Part shown: positions 1 to 63,628 of the stretch, in pieces
Layout: every line of letters starts with the position of its first letter
How positions within the stretch are numbered: position 1 is the first letter of the stretch
Origin: Podarcis tiliguerta
Lineage: Eukaryota
Direction: 5' to 3' (one strand)
NCBI GenBank assembly: GCA_965153285.1
Contig: OZ229121.1
DNA: 64,000 bases
Notes under the pieces: generated by a model
Told to the model about the DNA's origin: nothing
Database searches by the model: none
What the model saw: only the letters and a program-made list of their open reading frames with translations
Program-made: the position numbers and the translations under genes

Positions 1-796
1 ATGCGAGCCCCCACCCTGCAACAGCCAATGAACACACCTAGCAGACTAGAACATCACATGACTAGAGCAACCCCTTGCAAGAGCTTCCAGCTCAGCCCTG
101 CCTCTTCAGTCTGAGCAACACTCAGCTCACCACAGTTCTCTGCCAAGTATTTCCTGCCTCACTTTTTATCCGTGCCTCTTCCTGTGTCTTTTTACTTAAT
201 GCCAGTTGACCTAGCAGTCGCCCAGTCTGACGTTTCTCCACAAGTGCTTGGGGAATACAAGTCAGATTCATGCTTTTTCTTTCTCTGCTTTGCTCCCCCA
301 AACTCAAAATGCTATTAAGCTCTGTTTTTCAAAAAGCGAGACAGAAGCACAGCACGGCTACAATTAACGTCAACAGGGAAAAGCGGGTGATATGGAGAAA
401 ATATCGACTGGAAATACCATCGAGACCTCCCAAGCAAAGTATCAAGACACTCTTATTTTCAGACTAGGGCAGGCAGTGTGCAAGGTTTTGTTGCTGTTGT
501 TGTTCCAATGCCCAATGATGGAGTGGATGGCCTGGGTAGGAACAGAATACTATGGTTCAGTTCAGCATTGACAAGAAAACCATGGTTTCCTGCTATGTGA
601 ATGAACCACGGTGAGCTTTGAGCTTCTGCTCCCCACTCCCCTCTTTCATCTCCAGGAGTAAGAAGCTTCTGCTTCTATAAGAACAACAAACATAAGAGCA
701 GCCTGTTGGCTCAGGCAAATGGCCCATCTAGCACACCATCAGTTTCTCACAGTGGCCACCTAGACGACCGTGGGAAACCCGGAAGCAGGACCCAAG

Positions 797-1300
797 TGTG
801 GCGATCACACAGGGTCCCCAGACATTTCACCGTCTATTGATCCCTGTGCCACTACTTTATTTCTCGCTGCCACCACCCAGGCCCTACCTGGGACAATACT
901 GAATCCAGTCAGGGTTAAATTGGAACATAAACTTCTGTTTATTTATTGCAGTTTAACAAGCATGTGGTTTCATAAACGGTATCGGTCAATTACAATCACG
1001 GGGTGCCTATCCAGACCTATCACTTCCGCTACCTGCTCTCACTCACTAAACCACCTCTCAGATATTTACTTGTCTGCCTAGCCCCTAACTGTTCCTGACT
1101 CAGCTACACTAACTCAACCTGCCCACAAACTCTATCCCAATTCACTCCCACTCCAACCAACCACCCAACTCCCAACGAACTCTTCCTTCACCCCTCCCAG
1201 AGCTGGTTTTATAGTCCCACTGACTCCACCCCCTGGGTTCTGATTGGGTAACCTGTTTAACTATTTCACCTCCAGCACTCTCTCCTATGTTAACGTTACA
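797..1300 (-). mobile_element. Solo LTR
   Basis: TGT...ACA termini; 5-bp TSD CCAAG at 792-796 and 1301-1305; TATAAAA and AATAAA on the minus strand; splits an older CR1-like 3' fragment. Confidence 0.8.
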
Positions 1301-2154
1301 CCAAGCAGGACTCTTGTCTCCTGTGAAAGAGAAGCATTGCGGTCTCCAACTGTAGAGGCATTAAAGCGAGGAGCCATCAGCAGCTCTCTCCTGCGTAAAT
1401 TTTTCCAATCCTCTTTTATAAAACTTATGTTTATAATACATTTATCTTGACATCCAAACTTGGGAAACCCATGGTTTGTTTAAATTAAGGCGAGTACAAA
1501 TCAGGATCAAAACATAGGGAACTGTGGCTAGTTTAAAATCTGAAGCAGAATCCTCTAATCTCCCCTGACATGTGGAAGATTTGGGGGGGGGGGGGCAAGT
1601 GAACACAAAAGCCCAAGCAGCCTCATTCATGTAGAGGGGAACAATGGCTGCCTGTTGTGCCTGAGGGCCAATGGAGGAGGGCCTTTTCCTACTGGAGGCT
1701 GCCTGAACCATTTGCTCATCAGAGGCTCTCCTCCAGGTCCTCCCATCACCTAAAGCGAGGTGGTGGATGCCTAGGAAGAAGATTTTTTCCACCGTGGTGC
1801 CTTGCATTAGTAACACCTACCCCAGAGCAGCTCACCTGATGCCATTTTTGAAGCCTCTTCAGCACAAGGAAGAGGGTCTTTTTCAGCTGCCTAGCCACTG
1901 CAGCATGTTTTAGAGCATGTTTTATTTTCGTTTTTATAGCTCTGCTGGATTTTATGAGTGCTACCCTTTTGCACTTTTAACGTTTTATATAGAGATTTCA
2001 TTGCAGTTTCTTCATATAAACTGTACATCACTCAGCAGCCTTTGCAATGAAGAACTGCCGATAGATAATATTAAACAAATTCCAATATGTATGTAAGCAG
2101 CTTTGAGACACAACCTAAGGCTCTGTACAGCAAGATTACAAAGGCCTCATCGCA

Positions 2155-2530
2155 TCTGGAAACCAAGCCTTATGAGGAATGGTTTAGGGAGGTGGATATG
2201 TTTAAGCCTGGAGAAGGGCAGACTGAGATGTGATACAATAGCCACCTTCAAATATCTAAAGGGCTGTTACATGGGTGATGGAGCAAGCTTGTTTTCTACT
2301 GCTCCAGAGGGTAGGACTCAAACCAATGAATTCAAGTTACAAAAAGGGAGATTCCAGCTAAATATCAGAAGAGCTTTCAGATGGTAAAGCTGATCAACAG
2401 TGGAACAGACTCCCTCTGAAGGCGGCAGATTCTCCTTCATGGAAGGTTTTTAAGCCATCTGTCATGGGTGCCTTGCAGGGGGGTTAGACTAATGACCCTG
2501 GGGTCCTTTCCAAATCTACAATTCTATTTT
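2155..2530 (+). mobile_element. CR1 LINE 3' fragment
   Basis: Degenerate ORF2 end (SLEKGRLRCDTIATFKYLKGC...GRTQTNEFKL) and a CR1-type tail ending TTCTA. Confidence 0.85.
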
Positions 2531-3109
2531 TGTAAGATTCTTGCATCGACTCCTTTCAGGTTCATCCACAGCTTTGCAACAAAACAGCACCAACAATTCT
2601 ATAGCCATACAGCTGACAACCAAGGACTCATGTTTTACTTATTGCTTATTATTATACTATTATTTTTTTATTAACTTTATGTACCACCCTTCATCAACAG
2701 ATCTCAGGGCATTTTGGAATAAAATACAAGATAAAACACAATAATTAAACCAAAACCACAAAACAATAACCTCCCCCCCTTCCCACAGGCACATGTAAAA
2801 GTCTGTAGGATATTAATCAGCCAAATGCTTGGTTGAAGACGAACGTTTTTGCCCAGCGCCTAAAAATATATAATGAAGGTGCCAGGCGAACCTCCCCGGG
2901 GGAGAGCATTTCACAAATGGGGAGCCACTGCAGAAAAGGCTCCGCTCTCTACTCGACAGCCTTGCTCTGTACAAGAAGTCACCCAGAAACATATTAACTC
3001 AATTTAAGTCAGAAACTAGGTACCCATTCAAATGTCACTCAGCAGCCTCCTTTTCTCTGCATCCCCACCATCACAATTCCCCAATTTCCCCCCGCTCAAA
3101 ATTTCTTAC

Positions 3110-5212: not shown

Positions 5213-5891
5213 CTGGGTAAAGAAATGTAAAAAGGATGAGAGCAGGAGGGAGGATATGAAAGCATCAGAACGGTCATATTAATCAGCCTATGTTCCTGGG
5301 GAAGTGCAAGTGGAATGTTGAAAACGTGTTTTTTATAGTAGATACTTCTACTACCACTACCACCACTACTTAAGAATGCTCGAGAGGAGAAGTTCTCACA
5401 ATCTGTCAGATTAAGAAAAACAGCTATAGTATCCCTTCTATGACCTATTTGCAGCTCCAGGACCACATGGCAACTGTGAATCCCTGCTAGTGTTTGCAAA
5501 TAGTTTTTTGTTGTTTTGTTTTAAAGGGACAACTCTCTAAGGCACTAAAAATCAGGGGTGAAACAGAATTATATAAAAGTTCTTAGCATTTGCCCCTCGG
5601 CGTCTGGATGGTATCAACTATTCTGGACAGCTGTTTGCTTGCTACGCGTTTGGGCCCCTCTTAATGATATTGTGACCAAATTTCAAGTTCCCCAAGTGCA
5701 ACAGGTTTCCCTCTATGTTTGGATACCACTGGCCACCATTTTGAACAAGGTGGCGGACTGAACCTTCCAAAACTGCACTGTTTTTTTGGGGGGGTCGCTT
5801 AGAATTCCCGAGTAACAGCAGGAAGGAGGCAGCTGGCCTTGCTACAATTCGTAGGGGGCAAAGGCGTTCCATGATGGCAGTGGATCTTTAC

Positions 5892-6045
5892 CTGAGGTGT
5901 CCGAAGGTGAAGAGGCATGAGTCCCGAGGGAGTGTCGGCAAGCACATTGAAGTGTGGGGTGGGAGGAGGCCCCATGGCCATGGGCCGGCTCTCAGGATCC
6001 ACTTGGTAATTAATAAGCCCCCACTGTTCCAAAAAGGCATGTACC
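5892..6045 (-). CDS. SMARCC1: SMARCC1 exon 17
   Basis: [51 protein letters not shown]; AG/GT boundaries; 154 nt. Confidence 0.97.
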
Positions 6046-6097
6046 CTAGGAGGTGACATTAAAAGAGCGAAAGACTGAATGGAGGAAAAGTTATCAG

Positions 6098-45440: not shown

Positions 45441-46979
45441 AGGGAAACATGTAAATGTAGTTTTAATTCTGTATATATGCCCTGTGTTCCTGCATTGATA
45501 GTAATTATTTCCTCATCTATTAAATTCATGCTTTTAAAGAACACTTCCAACAGTTTCATTCGCTAACCTCTGAGACTTCAATAATGCTTTTTACTGCTAT
45601 GTTAATAATGTTTTAACTGTCTCAGAGATTATATGCTGCTATGAACGTTATACCTTTTACTATGCCAAGACATCTCGTAAAAAGGGGAAACAAGCCCATA
45701 TTTAAAGTTCCACATGGTACGTAATTTCTTGGCCACGCACAGAGGACCTTGGACACACTTCACGGTTTCACCACCACCTTAGAAATTAGTGCAAAGACAG
45801 CTTCAGCTAGACTTAAATGAAACCGATAGCCCTGTCAGCTCACACATCTAGGCCCAGAAGTCCTCTTAGGACAAAAGACCACACTGAGCATGTGCCCCAG
45901 GGACCTTTAGAAATGGACAACCTCCTTCCTCCGGTTTTGTTCCATCACGCATTATCCCTCTGACCTCTTATAGCCCCCCCCCCCCCCGCAGAAAGGCTGA
46001 AAATAGAGAATAACAGCAACCTGATATTTGAAGCAGGGACAGCTTTAACATAACAAGCCCCACAACTGCAGGGTGAAGAGGCAGCTGGCCCTTTGTTAGC
46101 TCTTCCCAGGGAAAGCAAAGACCTTGCCTCTTCCGCACAGAGCCCGCCCCCTTCCCTTCACACAAGAGCTCCCATTCAACTGGAAAAGGCTATCCTCTTT
46201 CCCCTAAACCCAGGTAGGTAAAAGGACACCCGGACCAAGTCTGAACCAATTTGCACAAGCCACTCCCCTTTTAAACTACCATTCTCAGGAGACAAGGAGC
46301 CTAGGTCCCTGCCCCCAACTATTCCCAGGATTACACTCCATTCAGTTCCTTTCTCTCTTAAGCCACACACACCCCTTCTGTTTATTCATTTATTGAATTT
46401 GCACGCCACCCTTCATGCACAGGTCTCAGGGCAGTTCACAGCATAAGAATACAAGATAAAAAAATACAGAATATATAATGAAAACAAACCAATGAGCCTC
46501 CTCCCCTCCAATACTCATTCTGTATGTAAACATCTACATTCACAAGATAAACACAAACCACATGACCCGAAAAGGGTCACCCTTCCGCCTGCCATCAATT
46601 CAGCACCTGTTTATTGCAAAATGCAACCTGCACAAGCGTGTTTACATGCTCCCCTATGAGTCCCAAAGGAAGTCGGCTGGCTGAAGTCCTGTTGATCCAC
46701 CCCTCAAATACTCTTTATAATAGGAAACAACCCTCCAGAGAGGACGCCCATCCCTCACACCCCAGTGTTGCCCACCAAGTTGCTCTTAATTCCCTCGCCT
46801 GCACCTGGCCCCCTTTGAGTCCCCACCCGGCTTCCCTCCTCCTTATTCTGCACACCCTTACTCGGGAGTAAACCCCGCTGACTTCGGAGGCACTTCAAAG
46901 GACACCCCCCCCCCGCCAGATCACCTCCCATCTTGGGGCTTTTGTTTTCTTTTTGGCACTCAAGTCGCCTCCCTTTGTC

Positions 46980-48050
46980 ATGCCCCCCTCTCCGCCAGCC
47001 CCGCGAGAGGGAGGCTCCCTCGGGCAGAGAGAGGGTCCGGTGCCAGGGATGGGAGGGGGCGGCTTCCCCCCTCAGGCCCCGCCCTCCCTCCCTCGCCGAG
47101 GGAAGGAAAGGGGCCCGTGAGGAGAAAGAGGGAGGGGAGGCGGCGGCGAGGCCCCCTGAGGGGAAGAAGGCGAGGCCTCTTTCTCCTCAGGCGCCGCCGC
47201 CGGGGCCTGGTCTTCGGCCTCCTCACCTTCTTGCAGTGCTTGCCGAGCCAGGCCCGCGCGGCGTCCAGCTGAGAGACGGTGTCGGGGCTCTCCCAGAACT
47301 TCCCCGAGGGGCCGCCGTCCTTGCGCCGCGACGCCGACAACGGGGCGGCGGAGGAGACCCCCGAGCCGGGCGCGCCCCCTAGGCCGCCGCCTGCAGGCAC
47401 GGCCGCCGCTGCTGCTGCTGCTGAGGCGGCCGCCGCTGCCGCCGCCGCCATTGTCCTTCCCGGCCTTCCGCGCCTCCTCCGCCGCCACCGCCGCCGGGGC
47501 CCGACGCCTCCCACTCGCTTGGCCCCGCGCATGCGCAGAGCCCGCGGGACGCCGCGGCGGCGGCTGCTGCCACACCGCCGCCACTCTCCCGCGCGCACGC
47601 GCAGCGGACGAGCCTCCCACGCGCTCTTGCCTCACGCCGCGCCTTCCCCGCCCGCGCGCGGGACGCCGGCTCCTCGCGCTGGCTCAGGAGGCGGGAGTGC
47701 TGCCGGGCGCATGCGCACCAAGGGACGCTTCTACGGCCGCCCCCCTGGAGACGCCCTCTCCGCGCAGGCGCCGGCTGCGGGCGGGCCACGCCTCCCGGAG
47801 GATGTGCGCATGGGCGAGGCGGGAGCGCTTTCTTCCCCCCCCCTCTCTGCGCAGGCGTGCCGGGAAAAGCTGCGCGCCTGCGCGCTGAGGGGCCCTTGTT
47901 CTGGTCGCTGCCGGGCGGAGCGGCGTGGCGGGAGCTGGAGCAGCAGGCGGGCAAAGAAGCAGCCCGGGCCTGGCAGGAAGGAAGCAGCAGCAGCAGCAGG
48001 GTTTGGCGCCAGGGATCCCCAGCAATTACTCGGATCTGTTGCGCCCAGCT
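46980..48050 (-). promoter_or_regulatory. CpG-island promoter / 5' region of SMARCC1 with clustered NRF1-type sites
   Basis: Very GC/CpG-rich and spans exon 1. Perfect GCGCATGCGC at 47527-47536 and 47707-47716, with near-matches around 47590, 47805, 47848 and 47875. Confidence 0.85.
47227..47451 (-). CDS. SMARCC1: SMARCC1 (BAF155) coding exon 1, ATG at 47451
   Basis: Encodes MAAAAAAAASAAAAAAAV...RRKDGGPSGKFWESPDTVSQLDAARAWLGKHCKK (75 aa), matching the SMARCC1 N-terminus. Donor AAG/GTGAGG; lies in a CpG island. Confidence 0.95.
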
Positions 48051-55959: not shown

Positions 55960-56241
55960 TCATCTGTTGTTGATGAGCACTGGCGGGACGCAGGGCTGGC
56001 CTGCAAACTCGTCTTGCTGCTTGCTGACGCCTGGTTGCACCTGCCAACCGGATACAAATGGCTCCCTAGGATTAGAAGCGCTGGAATTTATATTGTTAGT
56101 CCTCAAGCCCTGATTGCTCCTAGAGTTCCACTGCTGAATGGTACTTGTCTGCTTGCCAGGAGCTTCGCACGGTGGGTCCTGAAGCGCCTTATACTCTGTG
56201 TCGGAAAGGGGGAATGTGCGGGGCTCCCACGGCTGGACGTT
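55960..56241 (-). CDS. KANSL1-family terminal coding exon, TGA at 55962-55960
   Basis: NVQPWEPRTFPLSDTEY...PPVLINNR*, matching KANSL1 VQPWERRTFPL; strong polypyrimidine tract plus TAG acceptor. Confidence 0.88.
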   Translation of the reverse strand, partial: NVQPWEPRTFPLSDTEYKALQDPPCEAPGKQTSTIQQWNSRSNQGLRTNNINSSASNPREPFVSGWQVQPGVSKQQDEFAGQPCVPPVLINNR

Positions 56242-57201
56242 CTACGACAGAGAGAAAGAGCAGCAGCGTTAACGGAACGGAATATATTATTGTCATTTGA
56301 GGAGTAGGCGCGAGAAAGAGAGAGATTATGCATGCTTCCATCTTGCATGGATGAGATTAAAAAACAGGAGAAGCTTTTCTCTTGAAGGAACAACAAAATC
56401 AACAGTAATCATCCTCTCAACCCTTATTCATAGGTCTAGTTTATATATGCCACTTTCTTTATCTTGATAAATATGATGCCTTCCATAGAATGAGAAGCTG
56501 TTTTAAGTCACTGGCAACAGGATGTCAAGGTGCTCAGCTCACATATCATGCTAAGCACAATTAAAAGGCCACACCATAGAATAAGCATTTAAGCAAACCG
56601 TGCTTTAGAGATCCACGTCAGCTTTTATTCTTCATCTGCTTAGCATTCAGCTTCATTGGCTTCCTCCTATTTCACTGGGGCACAGATAGACACACTAGGT
56701 GCCTCAACTGTCTTAGCTGTGCCTCTTTAACTGCGGTAAGATCAAAGACAACGTAGTTTGCAAACTAGTTTCAATACTCTTGTTTGGCTGCCTTTACAAA
56801 CCATGGTTTATGAACCAATATAGGTTCAGAGGTAAAAACTATGGCTTGGCATAACAACCCAACTATTGTGACACCTTTTTGGAAGTAAGGTTACAAGGTT
56901 TAACTTCTGTTTCCCACCCACCCACAGCACACAAATGCAAACAATCCACTGCAATGATACATTCAAAGTCCAAATCTAGAAGGTTTATTTGCATCCCCTT
57001 CAGCCCCAGAAATGCTTGTGAGCAATTCATCGATTGTATTCTCTTGTCTTTCATGGCAAATCCAAGATGGTGACATCATTTTATACTCTGAATGAGAGAC
57101 CATGGTGGGCAATGAAGATGACGGAAAAGCTTCGAATATGTATGGTTTGCCAAGTAAACAGGCTGTATACAAGCTCTCCAAGTAGAAACACAGGTCCTCA
57201 C

Positions 57202-57427
57202 CTGAATATCTTCGTCCATTTCTGAGAAGGAGAAACTTGTGTCTTCACTAAAGGACAGACTGTTTCTGCCCCTGCCCTTTATGAGAAGGGGCTGCAGAAC
57301 ATTGGAAAGTTCTGGGCTGAGAGACCCCATGGGAGAATTTGCATACTGGAGATGGTTAAGATTATGTGACGTGGCATCTGGAGAGCCCGGCTGAGGAATC
57401 CATCGGCCATCTGCTCTGTTAGAGCTC
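57202..57427 (-). CDS. KANSL1-family penultimate exon
   Basis: SSNRADGRWIPQPGSPDATSHNL...LSPEL...SEDTSFSFSEMDEDIQ, collinear with KANSL1 SDGR/SPD/SPEL/SEDT/DE motifs; TAG acceptor, GTGAGG donor; 226 nt. Confidence 0.88.
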
Positions 57428-58410
57428 CTAAAAGAAAAACACGCCACAAAAAAAACAATCACGCTGCCAATGTGAAGCCACACTGTGTTGACAACTGTTA
57501 CATGTGAGAACTGCAAAACTCAAGGAAGTGCAAGCTTAGAAGCAGAGAGAGCTATAGCCAAGGTATCATGCAGAATTTCAAAATGAACTCTTCACCCATA
57601 CTGCACACTCTTTAAAAACAACAGGAGTGGGCGGGGTGGGGGAAGAGAGTCTACTTGACTTTTCACTGCCATATTTACAGCCAGCACTCTCACTCTGGCA
57701 ATAATTCTACTCATGGATTTGACAATGAGGCTAAACTACTGGAGAGATTCTGCCTGGTTTAAGTAAGGGAATGTGGCTTAATACAGAGATCTTAGCTGCC
57801 ACATATTGCAATAATTCTAGTCCTCAGTGTTTGCAGCAGCACAGGATACTAAGGCTCTGAAATTAAAACGAGATCCAATGGCAAGTCTTCCTACAGACAG
57901 AGGTAGGTGTGTGTCTGTGTGTGTGTGTGTGATTTCATTCATCCTGTTATGCTGTTAAGATGCTTCCAAATCTTCATGGAAGCCAATTCTCTTCCTACCT
58001 GCTCTTACTCCATTAATTTCTGAAAACACAGAGGCTCAAAATATGATAAATCTCTATTATAAGGGAAATTCCACAGCGCTTCCAAGCCCGCTTGCATACT
58101 TTTGGAGCACCCTTAACAAAAGCTTATTCATTCATTATTTCAAACCTGTCAACAGTTAGGAGGGATATGTGTGTGGGGGGGTGTGAACTGACCCAAAGCT
58201 ATCAAATTATTTCCTAGCTAAGGAGAAACTTAAATCTTGTCTACTAAGGCTCAGTGCAAAACTGCTAATCCACCCAACCAAAGTTCACTTTCCTCACTCT
58301 TCATTAATGCTTTGCTCACAAGTTATGCAGGAAACAAAAGTTTTGAATATAATCTGACTTGGGAAGAGAACTACTCCACAACACACAGCCAACAGCAAAT
58401 GTTAGGATAC

Positions 58411-58523
58411 CTGTTCCCTCGCCTGTGGGAAATGGTTCCTGCCCAGGAATCCCAGCGGGCCCTTTCCAGCTCTTCATATTTTTGGTGATGGTTCAGATAT
58501 GTCTCATCAGAAATATCTTCCAG
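58411..58523 (-). CDS. KANSL1-family exon (PEHE core)
   Basis: LEDISDETYLNHHQKYEELERARWDSWAGTISHRRGN(R), carrying the PEHE pattern E-D-x-S-D...H-x-K-x-E-x-x-E-R-A-R-W; AG/GT boundaries; 113 nt. Confidence 0.93.
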
Positions 58524-59160
58524 CTAGGACAAAATAAAGTTATTTTTGACACATTCAAGAGAGTCAATAGATACTGTCCGTCCACCCACCCACCCAAGGA
58601 TACACAGGAAAAATAACCACATAATCTGTACAGGCCCAGCAGTGCAAGAGTTTAATAAAAGTACAGTTTCCCCCTTTCCACAGTTGCTAGAACATCACAG
58701 GTGTACACAAGTAGATAGGACTGTTTTGGTAAACGTGGCTACCAAATAAAGTACAATAATTTTGTCCAAAAACAGAACCAATTCTGCACCTTAATAACTA
58801 AATTTATGGAATATGTGTATACAACTTTTTGGATATACAAGAATGGAGGTTTTCTCACACAAAATAGGTTTTACGCTCCTCCATGGCAGTGTTATTCAGT
58901 CTTGCAGTCTTGAATGAGAACAAACCAAAAGGAATATGTGTTTGCTTTGATGACTGATTGGTTCAAGACGCAAAATGAATGTACTGACTGCTGGCAGGAT
59001 AAGCAAGGTAAGAATGGCAGTCTGTCACTCAAGGGAGTCAATTCTATGTAAAGTGAAGCTCTACACAGTAAATACAAGGCAAGAGAAGCCCTGGTCCGTG
59101 CAAGCCTAGTTAGACAGATGCACTGCTTGAGGCATAATGACCAGATCTGTTCCTCCTCAC

Positions 59161-59215
59161 CTCTGAATCTACTTCTCCTGAGGTCTTGAGCTCTTTGAGA
59201 TCCACCATTCTCCAG
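59161..59215 (-). CDS. KANSL1-family exon (PEHE)
   Basis: (S)WRMVDLKELKTSGEVDSE; CAG acceptor, GTGAGG donor; 55 nt; in phase with neighbours. Confidence 0.9.
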
Positions 59216-59649
59216 CTGCAGGAAGAAAATGGCAGTAATTAGGGTAATTTCTGCACATATTGCAAACAACTGCATCAACCAAAAGTGTACTCCAGGGCTT
59301 GGCTTGCTATGGTGCTGCTGCTTCCTCACCAGTAGACACTGAGGCAATGCCACATTCTGAAGTCAAATACCTTCTCCAAAAAATCGCCAAAGGAGGCGTC
59401 AAAACAGGCTATGCCTAGTTAGCTCTGGTGCTCACTTGTGCGAGTCCTAAAAACCATGCAGGTTTCACCTTCCTCATAAGCAAGTGGACCTGCTAAATAT
59501 CTACTGCTGAAATAGGGCGGGGGATGACGACAAGGTGGGATGCACAGAAGCAGAGTAAATGCTATCCTCCAGCACCAGGAAATAAACCCATTCCTTATTC
59601 ATGGCTACCGGGCTTCTTCAATTCCACTCTTAAAACATACATTGATGTA

Positions 59650-59839
59650 CAGTGGAACCTTGGTTCTCAAACTTCATCCGTTCTGGGAGTCTGTTCAACT
59701 CCTGAAACCGTTTGAAAACCAAGGTGCGGCTTCCAATTGGCTGCAGGAGCTTCCTGCACTCAAGTGGACTTCTGGGTTTTTGGAGTTCAGGAGCCAAAGC
59801 GTAAGAGTACCAAGGCGTTCAAGAATCAAGGTACGGCTG
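59650..59839. mobile_element. Tigger/pogo-like MITE remnant
   Basis: CAGTGGAACCTTGGTTCT...AGAATCAAGGTACGGCTG with TA flanks. Confidence 0.7.
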
Positions 59840-60632
59840 TACAGTACAGAACTCAATCACCCTCAACCTTACCACTGCTCTTGACTGTGTAGCACGAATG
59901 GATTTATTGGGGGGGGGGTCATATAATTATTGGGGAAACTGCCTTGTGTGCTATATGGCAGAAAAAGGTCGTGTGTGCGCGCGCACTTGTGTGTGTGTTT
60001 AAAAGCAAGTTTCTAACCCTCCATCCTGTGGAAGCAAACATACATCGCTTGCACCCAATATTCCTCAAGAGCCCTGAGGGTTAGGAAACTGCTCCACCGC
60101 AGCAAAGTAACTTTAAAAGGAAACAAGAGTTGGCAGTGAATGAAGATGTGCTTTAGGGTCAGGTACAAGTAACCTGTGAAGCTCTAGATGGATGTTTCTG
60201 GACTCCAATTCCCATCATCCCTGCCAACTGGCTACACTGGCTGCAGATAATGGGAGTCAGGATTCCAGGGGACCCTGCTGTAATACACAATTCAGCCACT
60301 GAGTCTTTGGCCAGTTCATGGTATTTTAAGTTCCTCCACACCAGGAAATACAGCTAATGCTACACCAGGAGGTACAGTTAGGAAACTGCCACCGTGCCTC
60401 AAGGCACTTTAGAAAGGAGTGTGTTGATGTGACAACTTCAAGAGGAGTTGTTGTTGTTAACTCAGCCCTGTCCTTGACTAGCAAAACGCAATTTGGCATG
60501 GCGTGCTGTATGTTTACTATTACAAAAGGACAACTGGATTTCTTGCAAAAATTATGAAAAACAACGCTCTTATGTCTAAATCAACATGCTCCAGCTGCTG
60601 TTTAAATCTGAAGAGCCTCCAGGTGAACCCAC

Positions 60633-60754
60633 CTTGGTGTCAAAATCTCTTTATACTGTAGCTTCTCCACCCGTGTAGCTGCAGCCATTGACATGGGGAT
60701 CACTATATTGTTGATGTCATAGGAACATTCCACCTTTTTCTTCTTGGCAGGCTG
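60633..60754 (-). CDS. KANSL1-family (KAT8 regulatory NSL complex subunit 1-like) exon, start of PEHE region
   Basis: [40 protein letters not shown](S), the signature KANSL1/KANSL1L/NSL1 motif; NAGNAG acceptor; AG/GTGGGT donor. Confidence 0.93.
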
Positions 60755-61123
60755 CTGAAACCAAACAAGGATCATCAGAAAAGAATACAAAAACATAGTA
60801 CTGTCATTCGCATTTCCTCCCAACACATCAAGTAGGTCAGCACTGATATGCCTACAACAGCACCTCCTATTATGGGCCCAATGCTCCATGCAGAATCAAT
60901 CTTGCCTGAATAAAAGGACTCTTAGGTGTGCCACATTTTTGCATTGATTTGCTGCAACTGCTCTGTGCAGCAGTTGTTCTTAGCTGCCTTGAGCATGCCA
61001 ATGGAAAGAGCTTAAAAAATGGACGCATCTTAAAACATGAATAATGAGCAGGCAACTAACATTGAATGTGCTACAGAGCACAGAATGGGATGGAGAAAGT
61101 ATCTTGACAGGGTGGGGCTAGGG

Positions 61124-61262
61124 CAGGCTTCTTCAACCTCGGCCCTCCAGTTGTTTTTTTTGGCCTACAACTCCCATGATCCCTAGCTAGCAGGACCAGT
61201 GGTCAGGGATGATGGGAATTGTAGTCTCAAAACATCTGGAGGGCCGAGGTTGAGGAAGCCTG
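61124..61262. mobile_element. Palindromic hAT MITE
   Basis: CAGGCTTCTTCAACCTCGGCCCTCCAG...CTGGAGGGCCGAGGTTGAGGAAGCCTG; 8-bp TSD GGCTAGGG; degraded relatives near 14205, 28250, 36185, 52160 and 60180. Confidence 0.85.
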
Positions 61263-61952
61263 GGCTAGGGGATGAAGTTTTCCAGGCAAAACTCCAAAGG
61301 CATTTCGGCCACCATGGAATGAAACGCTATTAGCCTGAGATATGGTTACTGAGGTCCTTCCAATAGGGCAAGAGGTAACCATATAATCACACTCAGGCAG
61401 TTTATTGATAAACACGGAAGCCATCTGAAATACAGCTTAAGGCTTTTTAAAATACAAAGAGAGCAAACAACCTCAGGATGAAAAAGGGTGAAGTAATATA
61501 TAGGAAAACACCCAAGACAAGAAGCTGAAGGACACAGGAATGTTCCGCCCAAAGCAAAAATGAAAAGGGGATAAGTGGATAGTCTTCTGCCTCTATTTCC
61601 ACGGTACATTTTATTCAACCTTCAAGGCTTCCTTTTTCTTTTGAAAAACCCCAGCAATGGTTTTTGGTTTTTTTTAGTGTAGTAGTCTGCATATCTAACC
61701 AATAATATTCCTAAAAGAAAACAAAAAAAGCCACCAGGAGATATGCTTGAAACAGCATAGCAAATGAGTTAGGAGACAATTCAAGGTTAAGAGAACAGCG
61801 CATCCTTTAAAAAACGTTTTGCACTCCCAAACACGCCTCGCTCAGGGGAAAGATGAAAGAGGCTTAAGTTTAAAGGGAAGTCCCCCAGCAACACTAATTC
61901 TGTATTTCCTCTTTGCGGTTCTGTTTGCCAGAGGAACTATGTTCCAACTCAC

Positions 61953-62119
61953 CAACGTCGAGCTGCTAGCAGTCATGGAATTGCCAGGGACTTGGTTGGA
62001 GTGGGGGGCAGGTGTGTTTTCAAAGCACAGAGATGGCACGTGATGTAAAGAACTGGGTTTGTAGGTTTGAGGGCTAGGAACAAAGAAGCCGCGACTGGCC
62101 GATCCTTTCAGCAGAGGAC
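61953..62119 (-). CDS. KANSL1-family gene, probable internal exon (Ser/Pro-rich linker before PEHE)
   Basis: (G)PLLKGSASRGFFVPSPQTYKPSSLHHVPSLCFENTPAPHSNQVPGNSMTASSSTL; CAG acceptor, TTG/GTGAGT donor; the phase-0 end fits the next exon. Homology is weak. Confidence 0.7.
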
Positions 62120-62774
62120 CTGGTAATGAAAACATGAAATTAAGAGGATATACTAACTCTGCAACTTCTGCTTAACCACAAGGTAGATGCGAGTTCATTT
62201 TTTCTACTGCACTTTCTGGAAATAGTTTATCTGGTTTTTTTTGATGTAGCTTTACTGGAGGAGCAACATCAAGTGGGAGTGAACCGCAAGTGTATCAATA
62301 TATATGTTACCCTAAAATATTGCTCCTGGTGCCCCCGTTTTGTGGATGTCCTACCTAAACCACCAACAACCCTACTGTTAAAATTGATGCACAATGATGG
62401 AGAGACTCGACGGAGAATTTTCTTTTGCCTCTCTTGCAAAAAACAAGCTTGTGTTCATTCAATAAAATCAACACAATCGTTTTAGGAGAGGGAAAAGGAA
62501 AAACTCCATTTAGAATAATGAATAATGAACTTAGGAAATTCTCTGATACATGATAAGCTGACCACTCAGGTGCTTTTAAAAACCATCGGGCAAGTTCATG
62601 GAGGACTGTTATCATGACCAATAGGTACTGATAGGTATAAGCAGAACTCGCCTGGACAGAGTCAATAGAGCCCTGGTTTCAGATACTGGGGACAAACAAC
62701 ATGCTATATCCACCTCTTTCCGGCTGCTGTCAGTGGACCTGACGATCCTTTGGTTTGATTTTGCCCATACAGTA

Positions 62775-62984
62775 CAGTGGTACCTCGCAAGACGAATGCC
62801 TCGCAAGACAAAAAACTCGCAAGACGAATTTCCCTATGGGCTTGCTTCGCAAGACGAAAACGTCTTGCGCCTTTTTCTTAAAACCGTCAATGCATTCCTA
62901 TGGGAAACCGTCAATGCACAGTGGTGCTTCGCAAGACGAAAAAACTCGCAGAACGAATTAATTTCGTCTTGCGAGGCACCACTG
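62775..62984. mobile_element. Tc1/mariner MITE, family A (no cargo)
   Basis: TIRs and TA TSD; interior matches the 32933 copy. Confidence 0.88.
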
Positions 62985-63628
62985 TACATTTCCTTAGACA
63001 GAATGCGGCACCTTGAATGGGAACTCAGGCCAAGAGCTAAAATAATGCTTTACTTATATTGCATATAATTTACCAGATGCAGACAGGGAAGATGAACAAA
63101 TGTTGTTGGTAAGGTCTTTCAAACCCCACTGGGGTATCTTGAGAGTCTTGAGTTTATGACTCAACCTGTGGTCCTCTCTCAGCAAGGCTTCAAAGTGTAA
63201 ATGAAGAGGGTTGCCTATTAGCAGAAGAAAACAAATTAACCCACACTTGTTATTATTCGTTATCCAAATTTATATCCTGTGATTGTTACAAATAATTCAC
63301 AAATCATGATAATTGCACGGAATACTTCCAATAATTATAGTACATACATATTAATGGTACAATATTTTGCTTCAAGTTTTTTTTAAAAGATGAGATCGGT
63401 TAGATTTCACATACTGTTCTTGTAGGTTTATGTACTTTACATTGTGGGGTATTTTGTACCTTGATGCTTTGTGTGCAACTATATTATCTTACTTAAAAAG
63501 GGAAAGATCTCGGTGAAGGCATGATTTATTTTCTTTGTACTTGCAACTGGTGCCAAGCTCAATACCGCCCATTTGGTATTTAACTTATATGGCTTTCCTG
63601 AATTACATTTTACTCCCAACCATACTGA

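Follow-up and report, generated by a model that had tools for sequence, protein, structure and literature searches.

A KANSL1-like gene beside a SMARCC gene in the lizard Podarcis tiliguerta very probably belongs to a third jawed-vertebrate paralog lineage of the KANSL1/NSL1 family

We analyzed a stretch of 64,000 nucleotides of contig OZ229121.1 (NCBI GenBank assembly GCA_965153285.1) from the lizard Podarcis tiliguerta, here called the window, which carries a SMARCC gene in its left part and the 3' part of a KANSL1-like gene near its right end. The KANSL1-like gene, with which this work is concerned, lies on the minus strand at positions 63214 to 55960 and has seven in-phase coding exons with approximately 367 codons and no internal stop codon. 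The original prediction, made from the nucleotide sequence without database searches, had proposed six in-phase exons with particular peptides, canonical splice sites, and no stops at this place. Inspection of the reading frames and the raw sequence bore this out, on the minus strand, and added the seventh exon, which lies upstream of the span first proposed. The gene was searched exon by exon, and a protein of Podarcis muralis (P0225; NCBI KAT8 regulatory NSL complex subunit 1-like isoform X2, 820 amino acids) was used as its stand-in in alignments and trees. The window exons are 97 to 100% identical to, and strictly collinear with, residues 454 to 820 of P0225, as determined by exon-by-exon BLAST against fetched proteins and by tblastn, and a Podarcis lilfordi protein annotated as hypothetical (P0240) matches them equally well. 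These identities assign the sequence to a lacertid, either Podarcis or a very near relative. The rest of the gene, corresponding to P0225 residues 1 to 453, was placed beyond the right end of the window.

A script check of the coordinates found an AG acceptor after a pyrimidine tract and a GT donor at all of the exons. The most upstream one, exon Z (63074 to 63214, minus strand, like all that follow), encodes (G)NPLHLHFEALLREDHRLSHKLKTLKIPQWGLKDLTNNICSSSLSAS between the acceptor ctaatag/GC and the donor G/gtaaat, and tblastn onto the window showed 100% identity to P0225 residues 454 to 501 up to the donor. Exon A (61953 to 62119) starts in phase 1 and encodes a low-complexity linker, PLLKGSASRGFF...SSSTL, with 98% identity to residues 502 to 556. 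Exon B (60633 to 60754, with its start at 60754 or 60751) carries a family-invariant block of (Q) plus 39 residues that is 100% identical to P0225 residues 557 to 595 and to P0240; a phmmer search with this exon returned 361 matches at an E value of 0.001 or lower in a library of 1.84 billion proteins. The acceptor of exon B is of the NAGNAG type, a tandem cag/cag at 60751 to 60756 on the minus strand, and P0225 lacks the resulting Gln, while P0240 and several other models include it. The PEHE domain starts in exon C (59161 to 59215), which encodes (S)WRMVDLKELKTSGEVDSE with the PSWR motif and is 100% identical to residues 597 to 614, and its core, LEDISDETYLNHHQKYEELERARWDSWAGTISHRRGN, is encoded by exon D (58411 to 58523; P0225 residues 615 to 651). 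Exon E (57202 to 57427) encodes a Ser/Pro-rich linker, SSNRADGRW...SEDTSFSFSEMDEDIQ, that is 100% identical to residues 653 to 727. The last coding exon, exon F (55960 to 56241), has its coding part at 56241 to 55963, the stop codon at 55962 to 55960, the invariant NVQPWEPRTFPL motif, and a C-terminal tail ending in VLINNR; its identity to P0225 residues 728 to 820 and to P0240 is 97 to 99%. The split codons fit as well: ILTP is followed by S (AG/C) and WRMV, and HRRGN is followed by R (AG/G) and SSN.

An intact PEHE domain had also been predicted, and exon D alone matched the Pfam PEHE family (PF15275) with an E value of 1e-11 and 45.9 bits, above the gathering score of 34; exons A, B, E, and F gave no Pfam match. 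Aligning 26 members of the family, ranging from Nematostella to Podarcis, gave 27 invariant columns. They include A373, R374, and R376 in an AAR.RP motif; residues from D568 to W597 in the block DINNIVIP.S...E...YKEI..P.W; E616, D620, H627, E631, and E634 in the PEHE core, all of which are kept in exon D; and P731, R735, F737, and P738 in the QPWE.R.FPL motif of exon F. Every family-invariant residue that falls in the window exons (B, C, D, and F) was kept. The Win motif CVAARIRP lies upstream of the window and is present in P0225 and throughout the clade to which P0225 belongs.

Among public sequencing runs, 18 were guessed to be RNA, and each of them contained 9 to 19% of the sampled words, approximately the exon share of 5,991 bases. 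Contigs from four RNA-like runs, belonging to four studies and two organisms close to the lizard, were compared with window positions 56150 to 62140. Spliced contigs were present in all four runs and joined exons A to F, which supports expression of the gene: the joints were 56241 to 57202, 57426/7 to 58410/1, 58523 to 59161, 59215 to 60633, and 60751 to 61953. They coincide exactly with the introns predicted, whose ends read CT..AC on the plus strand and hence GT..AG on the minus strand. The summed contig depth was approximately 40 to 180 on the exons versus approximately 0 to 17 on unique intron sequence, a difference of about 10-fold. The exon A pieces spanned 61953 to 62120, and contigs of 1.8 kb continued upstream of this exon. 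At the NAGNAG acceptor of exon B, the contigs used the distal AG (60751), without Gln. The contigs differed from the window in 11 of 626 letters in exons versus 44 to 47 of 1,018 letters in introns, which is approximately 2.5 times lower for the exons, and three of the four differences listed for exon E were synonymous. The spliced forms and the weak intron signal match what transcriptome sequencing gives.

A maximum-likelihood (ML) tree was built with IQ-TREE (LG+G4) from 43 proteins and 718 alignment columns. It contained three well-supported clades of jawed vertebrates: KANSL1 (support 100/100), with members from Rhinatrema, Xenopus, Narcine, Erpetoichthys, Gadus, a whale, and a flycatcher; KANSL1L (100/100), with the KANSL1-like proteins of Rhincodon and Microcaecilia; and a third clade (100/99), inside which P0225 falls. 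The third clade is represented by KANSL1-like models from Phrynocephalus, Chelonia, Spheniscus, koala, Rhinatrema, Discoglossus, Latimeria, Protopterus, Narcine, Erpetoichthys/Polypterus, and Polyodon. Lamprey proteins lay outside all three gnathostome clades, with no resolved position at the base of the vertebrate set, and the tree also held the invertebrate NSL1 proteins of Saccoglossus, Patella, Argopecten, and Nematostella. Branching within the third clade mostly followed the species tree, with the groups (bichir, paddlefish), (shark, ray), lungfish, coelacanth, amphibians, (monotreme, marsupials), (turtle, birds), and (tuatara, squamates); the exception was the ray-finned pair of bichir and paddlefish, which lay outside the sharks and rays. 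A placement of the squamate proteins inside KANSL1 was rejected, with a log-likelihood difference of 299 and a P value of 7e-55 in the approximately unbiased (AU) test.

Because of these separate clades and the AU tests, the window gene is certainly neither KANSL1 nor KANSL1L, and the genuine third KANSL1-family paralog that had been proposed at this locus stood up to the analysis. We regard it as almost certain that this gene represents, in a lacertid, a third gnathostome paralog of KANSL1/NSL1. The third lineage is older than the divergence of cartilaginous and bony vertebrates. The third clade grouped with KANSL1 (97/96), with KANSL1L outside the two, and this sister relationship is favored and moderately secure: the alternatives, with KANSL1 and KANSL1L as one clade (AU P value of 0.034) or the third paralog and KANSL1L as one clade (0.031), were weakly rejected. 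The protein had been described as a mosaic of KANSL1 and KANSL1L, and it is better read as a separate lineage, sister to KANSL1, with signature residues of its own. These are VECSYDINN, PMSMAAA, EDTSDE.YLNHH.KYEELER.RWDSW, and QPWEPR in the third clade, whereas KANSL1 has GESSFDINN, PMSVAATT, EDLSD.AF..H.KCEE.ER.RW, and QPWERR and KANSL1L has DIDN and PMSLVA.SK. KANSL1L, whose gene lies near MAP2 in human, belongs to the same PEHE family and has SYDI, RWxxW, and HRR-type residues in common with the third paralog, which are the source of the mosaic impression.

The spread of the third clade was examined with a penguin query and a koala query, for each of which the best 120 matches were considered from the 8,000 candidates sharing the most words, the only ones scored. 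All of these matches were third-clade members. They came from sharks, rays, skates, coelacanth, many frogs, a caecilian, tuatara, lizards, snakes, turtles, and many birds and, among the mammals, from koala, wombat, possums, wallaby, dunnart, devil, opossum, and echidna. The matches of the koala query were ordered as marsupials (83 to 100% identity), echidna (56%), and then sauropsids (approximately 49%). No eutherian protein of the third clade was among the best 120 koala matches, down to an E value of 3e-135, despite eutherians being the best sampled of the vertebrates, and this fits a loss of the gene in eutherians. Thus, absence from mammals, as proposed earlier, applies at most to the eutherians, in which no protein model was found, and fails for marsupials and the echidna, and the proposal that it gives sauropsids an alternative scaffold was too narrow for a clade that spans sharks to marsupials and a monotreme. 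Crocodilians, Galloanserae (galliform and anseriform birds), passerines, and teleosts also were not among the best 120 matches of either query, while ratites and many neoavian birds were; the gaps could reflect either additional losses in particular lineages or the limited reach of the search.

The SMARCC gene occupies the left 47 kb of the window, on the minus strand. Its exons of the SWIRM region, at approximately 13.8 and 5.9 kb, match the SMARCC2, RSC8, and SWI3 chains of the PDB, and the family was confirmed by PDB matches at 5880 to 6095. Exon 1 lies at 47300 to 47460 and encodes MAAAA...RRKDGGPSGKFWESPDTVSQLD, within an open frame at 46981 to 47631 on the minus strand (approximately 47.4 kb), and is surrounded by a CpG-rich promoter island at 46 to 48 kb with a GC content of 0.63. 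Long open frames are present on both strands at 46000 to 48000 and come from GC-rich low-complexity sequence; tblastn matches of the Ala/Pro-rich N terminus of P0225 at 46 to 48 kb likewise were spurious products of such sequence. Its peptides match human SMARCC1 rather than SMARCC2, and we take the gene to be SMARCC1; with this assignment, the predicted adjacency to SMARCC1 agrees with the SMARCC exons found. The stop codon of the KANSL1-like gene lies approximately 8 kb upstream of SMARCC1 exon 1, and the two genes have the same orientation. In human, SMARCC1 is adjoined by DHX30 and MAP4 at 3p21.31.

A single paralogon has been described that comprises 17q21 (MAPT, KANSL1, and MYL4), 2q (MAP2, KANSL1L, and MYL1), and 3p21 (MAP4 and MYL3), with no KANSL gene listed at 3p21 (Sündermann et al. 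2016, PMC4815063). The third paralog fits this empty KANSL slot of the MAP4 paralogon, and its duplication predates the gnathostome radiation; because of these two points, an origin as an ohnolog of the two rounds of whole-genome duplication (2R) is plausible. An alternative is a small-scale duplication of KANSL1, segmental or of a single gene, in a stem gnathostome. It gains from a comparison of topologies: in the published MAP tree (PMC4815063), MAP2 and MAPT form a sister pair and MAP4 is the first to branch off, and the KANSL topology that we obtained, (KANSL1L,(KANSL1,third)), does not mirror this. However, the KANSL topologies other than ours were rejected only weakly (P values of approximately 0.03), the gene adjoins SMARCC1, a neighbor of DHX30 and MAP4 in human, the paralogon has its vacant position at exactly 3p21, and the duplication is older than the divergence of cartilaginous and bony fishes, with lampreys outside all three clades. 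On balance, a small-scale origin appears unlikely.

With regard to function, the protein resembles KANSL1, whose gene lies beside MAPT in human, in the order of its domains. P0225 has in common with KANSL1 the N-terminal MAxMAPALT, the coiled coil, the WTWLQAQVSDLEYRIRQQTD block, the CVAAR.RP Win motif, the Cys-rich block, the PEHE domain, and QPWE.R.FPL, with an identity of approximately 35 to 39%. The AAR.RP motif we take to be the WDR5-binding motif of KANSL1, and the PEHE domain of KANSL1 reportedly binds KAT8/MOF. A family profile aligned the core PSWR...ED.SD..F..RH.K.E..E..RW with MSL1 in the MOF-MSL1 crystal structures 2Y0M and 4DNC with an E value of 3e-5; MSL1 is alike in this core (PSWR...E.L.D..F..RH.K.E..E..RW) and, beyond the PEHE domain, belongs to another family. 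No PDB match was obtained with exon B alone, and MSL1 was reached only by the family profile. The sole PDB match of the whole P0225, mL80, was discarded as a false match of low-complexity sequence.

The conserved motifs and the alignment with MSL1 point to a KANSL1-like scaffold mechanism as the most likely one. The protein would be a long, mostly disordered scaffold of the KANSL1 type, whose PEHE domain (exons B to D together with the QPWE.RTFPL motif of exon F) may bind the histone acetyltransferase domain of KAT8/MOF in the way that the PEHE domain of MSL1 does in the solved MOF complexes. The upstream CVAARIRP Win motif would bind WDR5, and the two interactions together would assemble an alternative NSL-like acetyltransferase complex. 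By analogy, binding of KAT8 by the third paralog is reasonably likely. Its partners or regulation may differ from those of KANSL1, because it has its own signature residues, evolves approximately twice as fast, and is 200 to 300 residues shorter in amniotes. The difference in rate was read from the ML tree, in which the path from koala to penguin is approximately 0.87 versus approximately 0.39 from whale to flycatcher for KANSL1. Amniote third-paralog proteins have approximately 740 to 880 amino acids versus approximately 1,040 to 1,105 for KANSL1, and much of this difference looks N-terminal.

Taken as a whole, the statement that the window holds the 3' part of an intact, transcribed ortholog of the third paralog with a KAT8/WDR5 scaffold mechanism of the KANSL1 type is likely to be correct, and several points weigh against it. 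The window contains only the C-terminal 45% of the gene, and an intact 5' half is presumed from close relatives. The RNA label of the sequencing runs is a guess, and the contigs come from close relatives, so that level, strand, tissue, and exact species are not readable from them. The approximately 2-fold faster evolution could point to a function that has been relaxed or altered, the PEHE domain departs from that of KANSL1 at several positions (for example, Y for F and HH for RH), and the binding of both KAT8 and WDR5 is predicted from the conserved motifs.

Some of these points would also suit a decaying or nonfunctional copy in this lizard, that is, a pseudogene or an unexpressed relic: the rate of evolution is higher than that of KANSL1, the 5' half is outside the window, and the seeming loss in eutherians, and perhaps in other lineages, makes the gene look dispensable in some contexts. 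Such decay is nevertheless very improbable in view of the seven exons with intact frames and canonical splice sites, the spliced contigs in four runs, the retention of all family-invariant residues, the lower divergence of exons than of introns from the related contigs, and orthologs that have been conserved over approximately 450 million years and branch mostly as the species do. An intact gene thus remains the preferred reading.

In the turtle, bird, frog, caecilian, ray, and bichir genomes that were checked, KANSL1 and the third paralog were found together, on chromosome-scale records of different lengths. The record with KANSL1 and that with the third paralog measured 16.1 and 262.5 Mb, respectively, in Chelonia mydas, 16.7 and 271.8 Mb in Caretta, 16.6 and 270.9 Mb in Eretmochelys, 46.9 and 79.4 Mb in Aquila chrysaetos, 11.9 and 170.3 Mb in Dromaius, 8.0 and 169.4 Mb in Ciconia boyciana, 52.4 and 154.5 Mb in Xenopus tropicalis, 87.8 and 825.6 Mb in Rhinatrema, and 103 and 376 Mb in Narcine; they likewise differed in Erpetoichthys. 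Coexistence of the third paralog (P0280) with KANSL1L (P0138) was seen only in the whale shark. The best 120 matches of a turtle query were from turtles, crocodilians, and birds, and a separate KANSL1 thus was shown for sauropsids other than lizards; the lizard itself presumably has separate KANSL1 and KANSL1L loci. That the window gene is instead the lizard ortholog of KANSL1 or KANSL1L, moved beside SMARCC1, might be read from the NCBI name KAT8 regulatory NSL complex subunit 1 given to some clade members (Pogona, Chelonia X5/X6, Caretta, Sarcophilus, Bombina, and Latimeria) and from the missing squamate KANSL1 and KANSL1L among the best 120 turtle-query matches, but this idea is largely refuted, and its probability is close to nil, by the separate clade and the rejected placement of squamates inside KANSL1, by the true KANSL1 of turtles and birds on a small record (approximately 7 to 47 Mb, mostly 7 to 17 Mb) with the third paralog on a much larger one, and by the KANSL1L that the whale shark has besides the third paralog.

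Models of the third paralog are present in dozens of NCBI annotations under the names KANSL1-like, KANSL1, hypothetical, and PEHE domain-containing, so the expectation that the gene already existed in databases as an unnamed model was right. The KAT8 regulatory NSL complex subunit 1-like models of Podarcis muralis, Anolis sagrei, Spheniscus, Phascolarctos, Tachyglossus, Xenopus tropicalis (XENTR_v10015709), and Rhincodon are orthologs of the window gene and do not differ from it in kind; they are automatic and inconsistently named, and no gene symbol separates them from KANSL1 and KANSL1L. In Chelonia mydas, KANSL1 isoforms X3/X4 on the 16.1-Mb chromosome are the true KANSL1, and isoforms X5/X6 on the 262.5-Mb chromosome are the third paralog. 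The third paralog also is labeled KANSL1 in Caretta, Pogona, Sarcophilus, Bombina, Xenopus laevis, Discoglossus, and Latimeria. Searches of the full-text literature turned up no account of a third KANSL1 paralog, and the published treatment of KANSL paralogy names only KANSL1, KANSL1L, and, wrongly, KANSL3.

Several repeats were noted in and around the introns of the window gene. At 61118 to 61268, within an intron, lies a palindromic element resembling a miniature inverted-repeat transposable element (MITE), with 40-nucleotide arms that are 90% complementary and 71 nucleotides between them. Its depth in the RNA-like contigs was 31,000 to 131,000, with many fold-back and cross-copy joints, which marks it as part of a repeat family with very many copies; another, related copy lies at approximately 60190 to 60240. 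A MITE at 62772 to 62990 has terminal inverted repeats GTACAGTGGTACCTCGCAAGACGAA (25 nucleotides, 96% complementary) and an internal second arm, and a high-copy repeat with a contig depth of approximately 500 to 3,000 occupies 59550 to 59950 in the intron between exons B and C.

What is new here is the recognition of the third paralog; the family and the automatic gene models were known, and the predicted mechanism is an ordinary one, an assessment that we consider well supported. KANSL1, the scaffold of the KAT8/MOF NSL complex, is sensitive to dosage, and Koolen-de Vries syndrome results from its haploinsufficiency. The KANSL family has been studied in human, mouse, and fly, all of which are without the third paralog, while Xenopus, lizards, many birds, marsupials, and sharks have a conserved, expressed third scaffold. 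Therefore, the NSL complex of most vertebrates would have a composition unlike that given in textbooks for mammals, and eutherians would have simplified it. The mixed use of the names KANSL1 and KANSL1-like can corrupt orthology tables and cross-species comparisons of expression. Tentatively, we suggest that non-eutherian jawed vertebrates might have a second, KANSL1-independent scaffold of the NSL type that brings KAT8 and WDR5 together in a separate complex, possibly confined to certain tissues or stages, and that its loss on the eutherian stem might have shifted functions onto KANSL1 or KANSL1L. If this is true, the loss would be what left the position between SMARCC1 and MAP4 at human 3p21.31 without a KANSL gene, and the shift could bear on the sensitivity to KANSL1 dosage that is seen in Koolen-de Vries syndrome.

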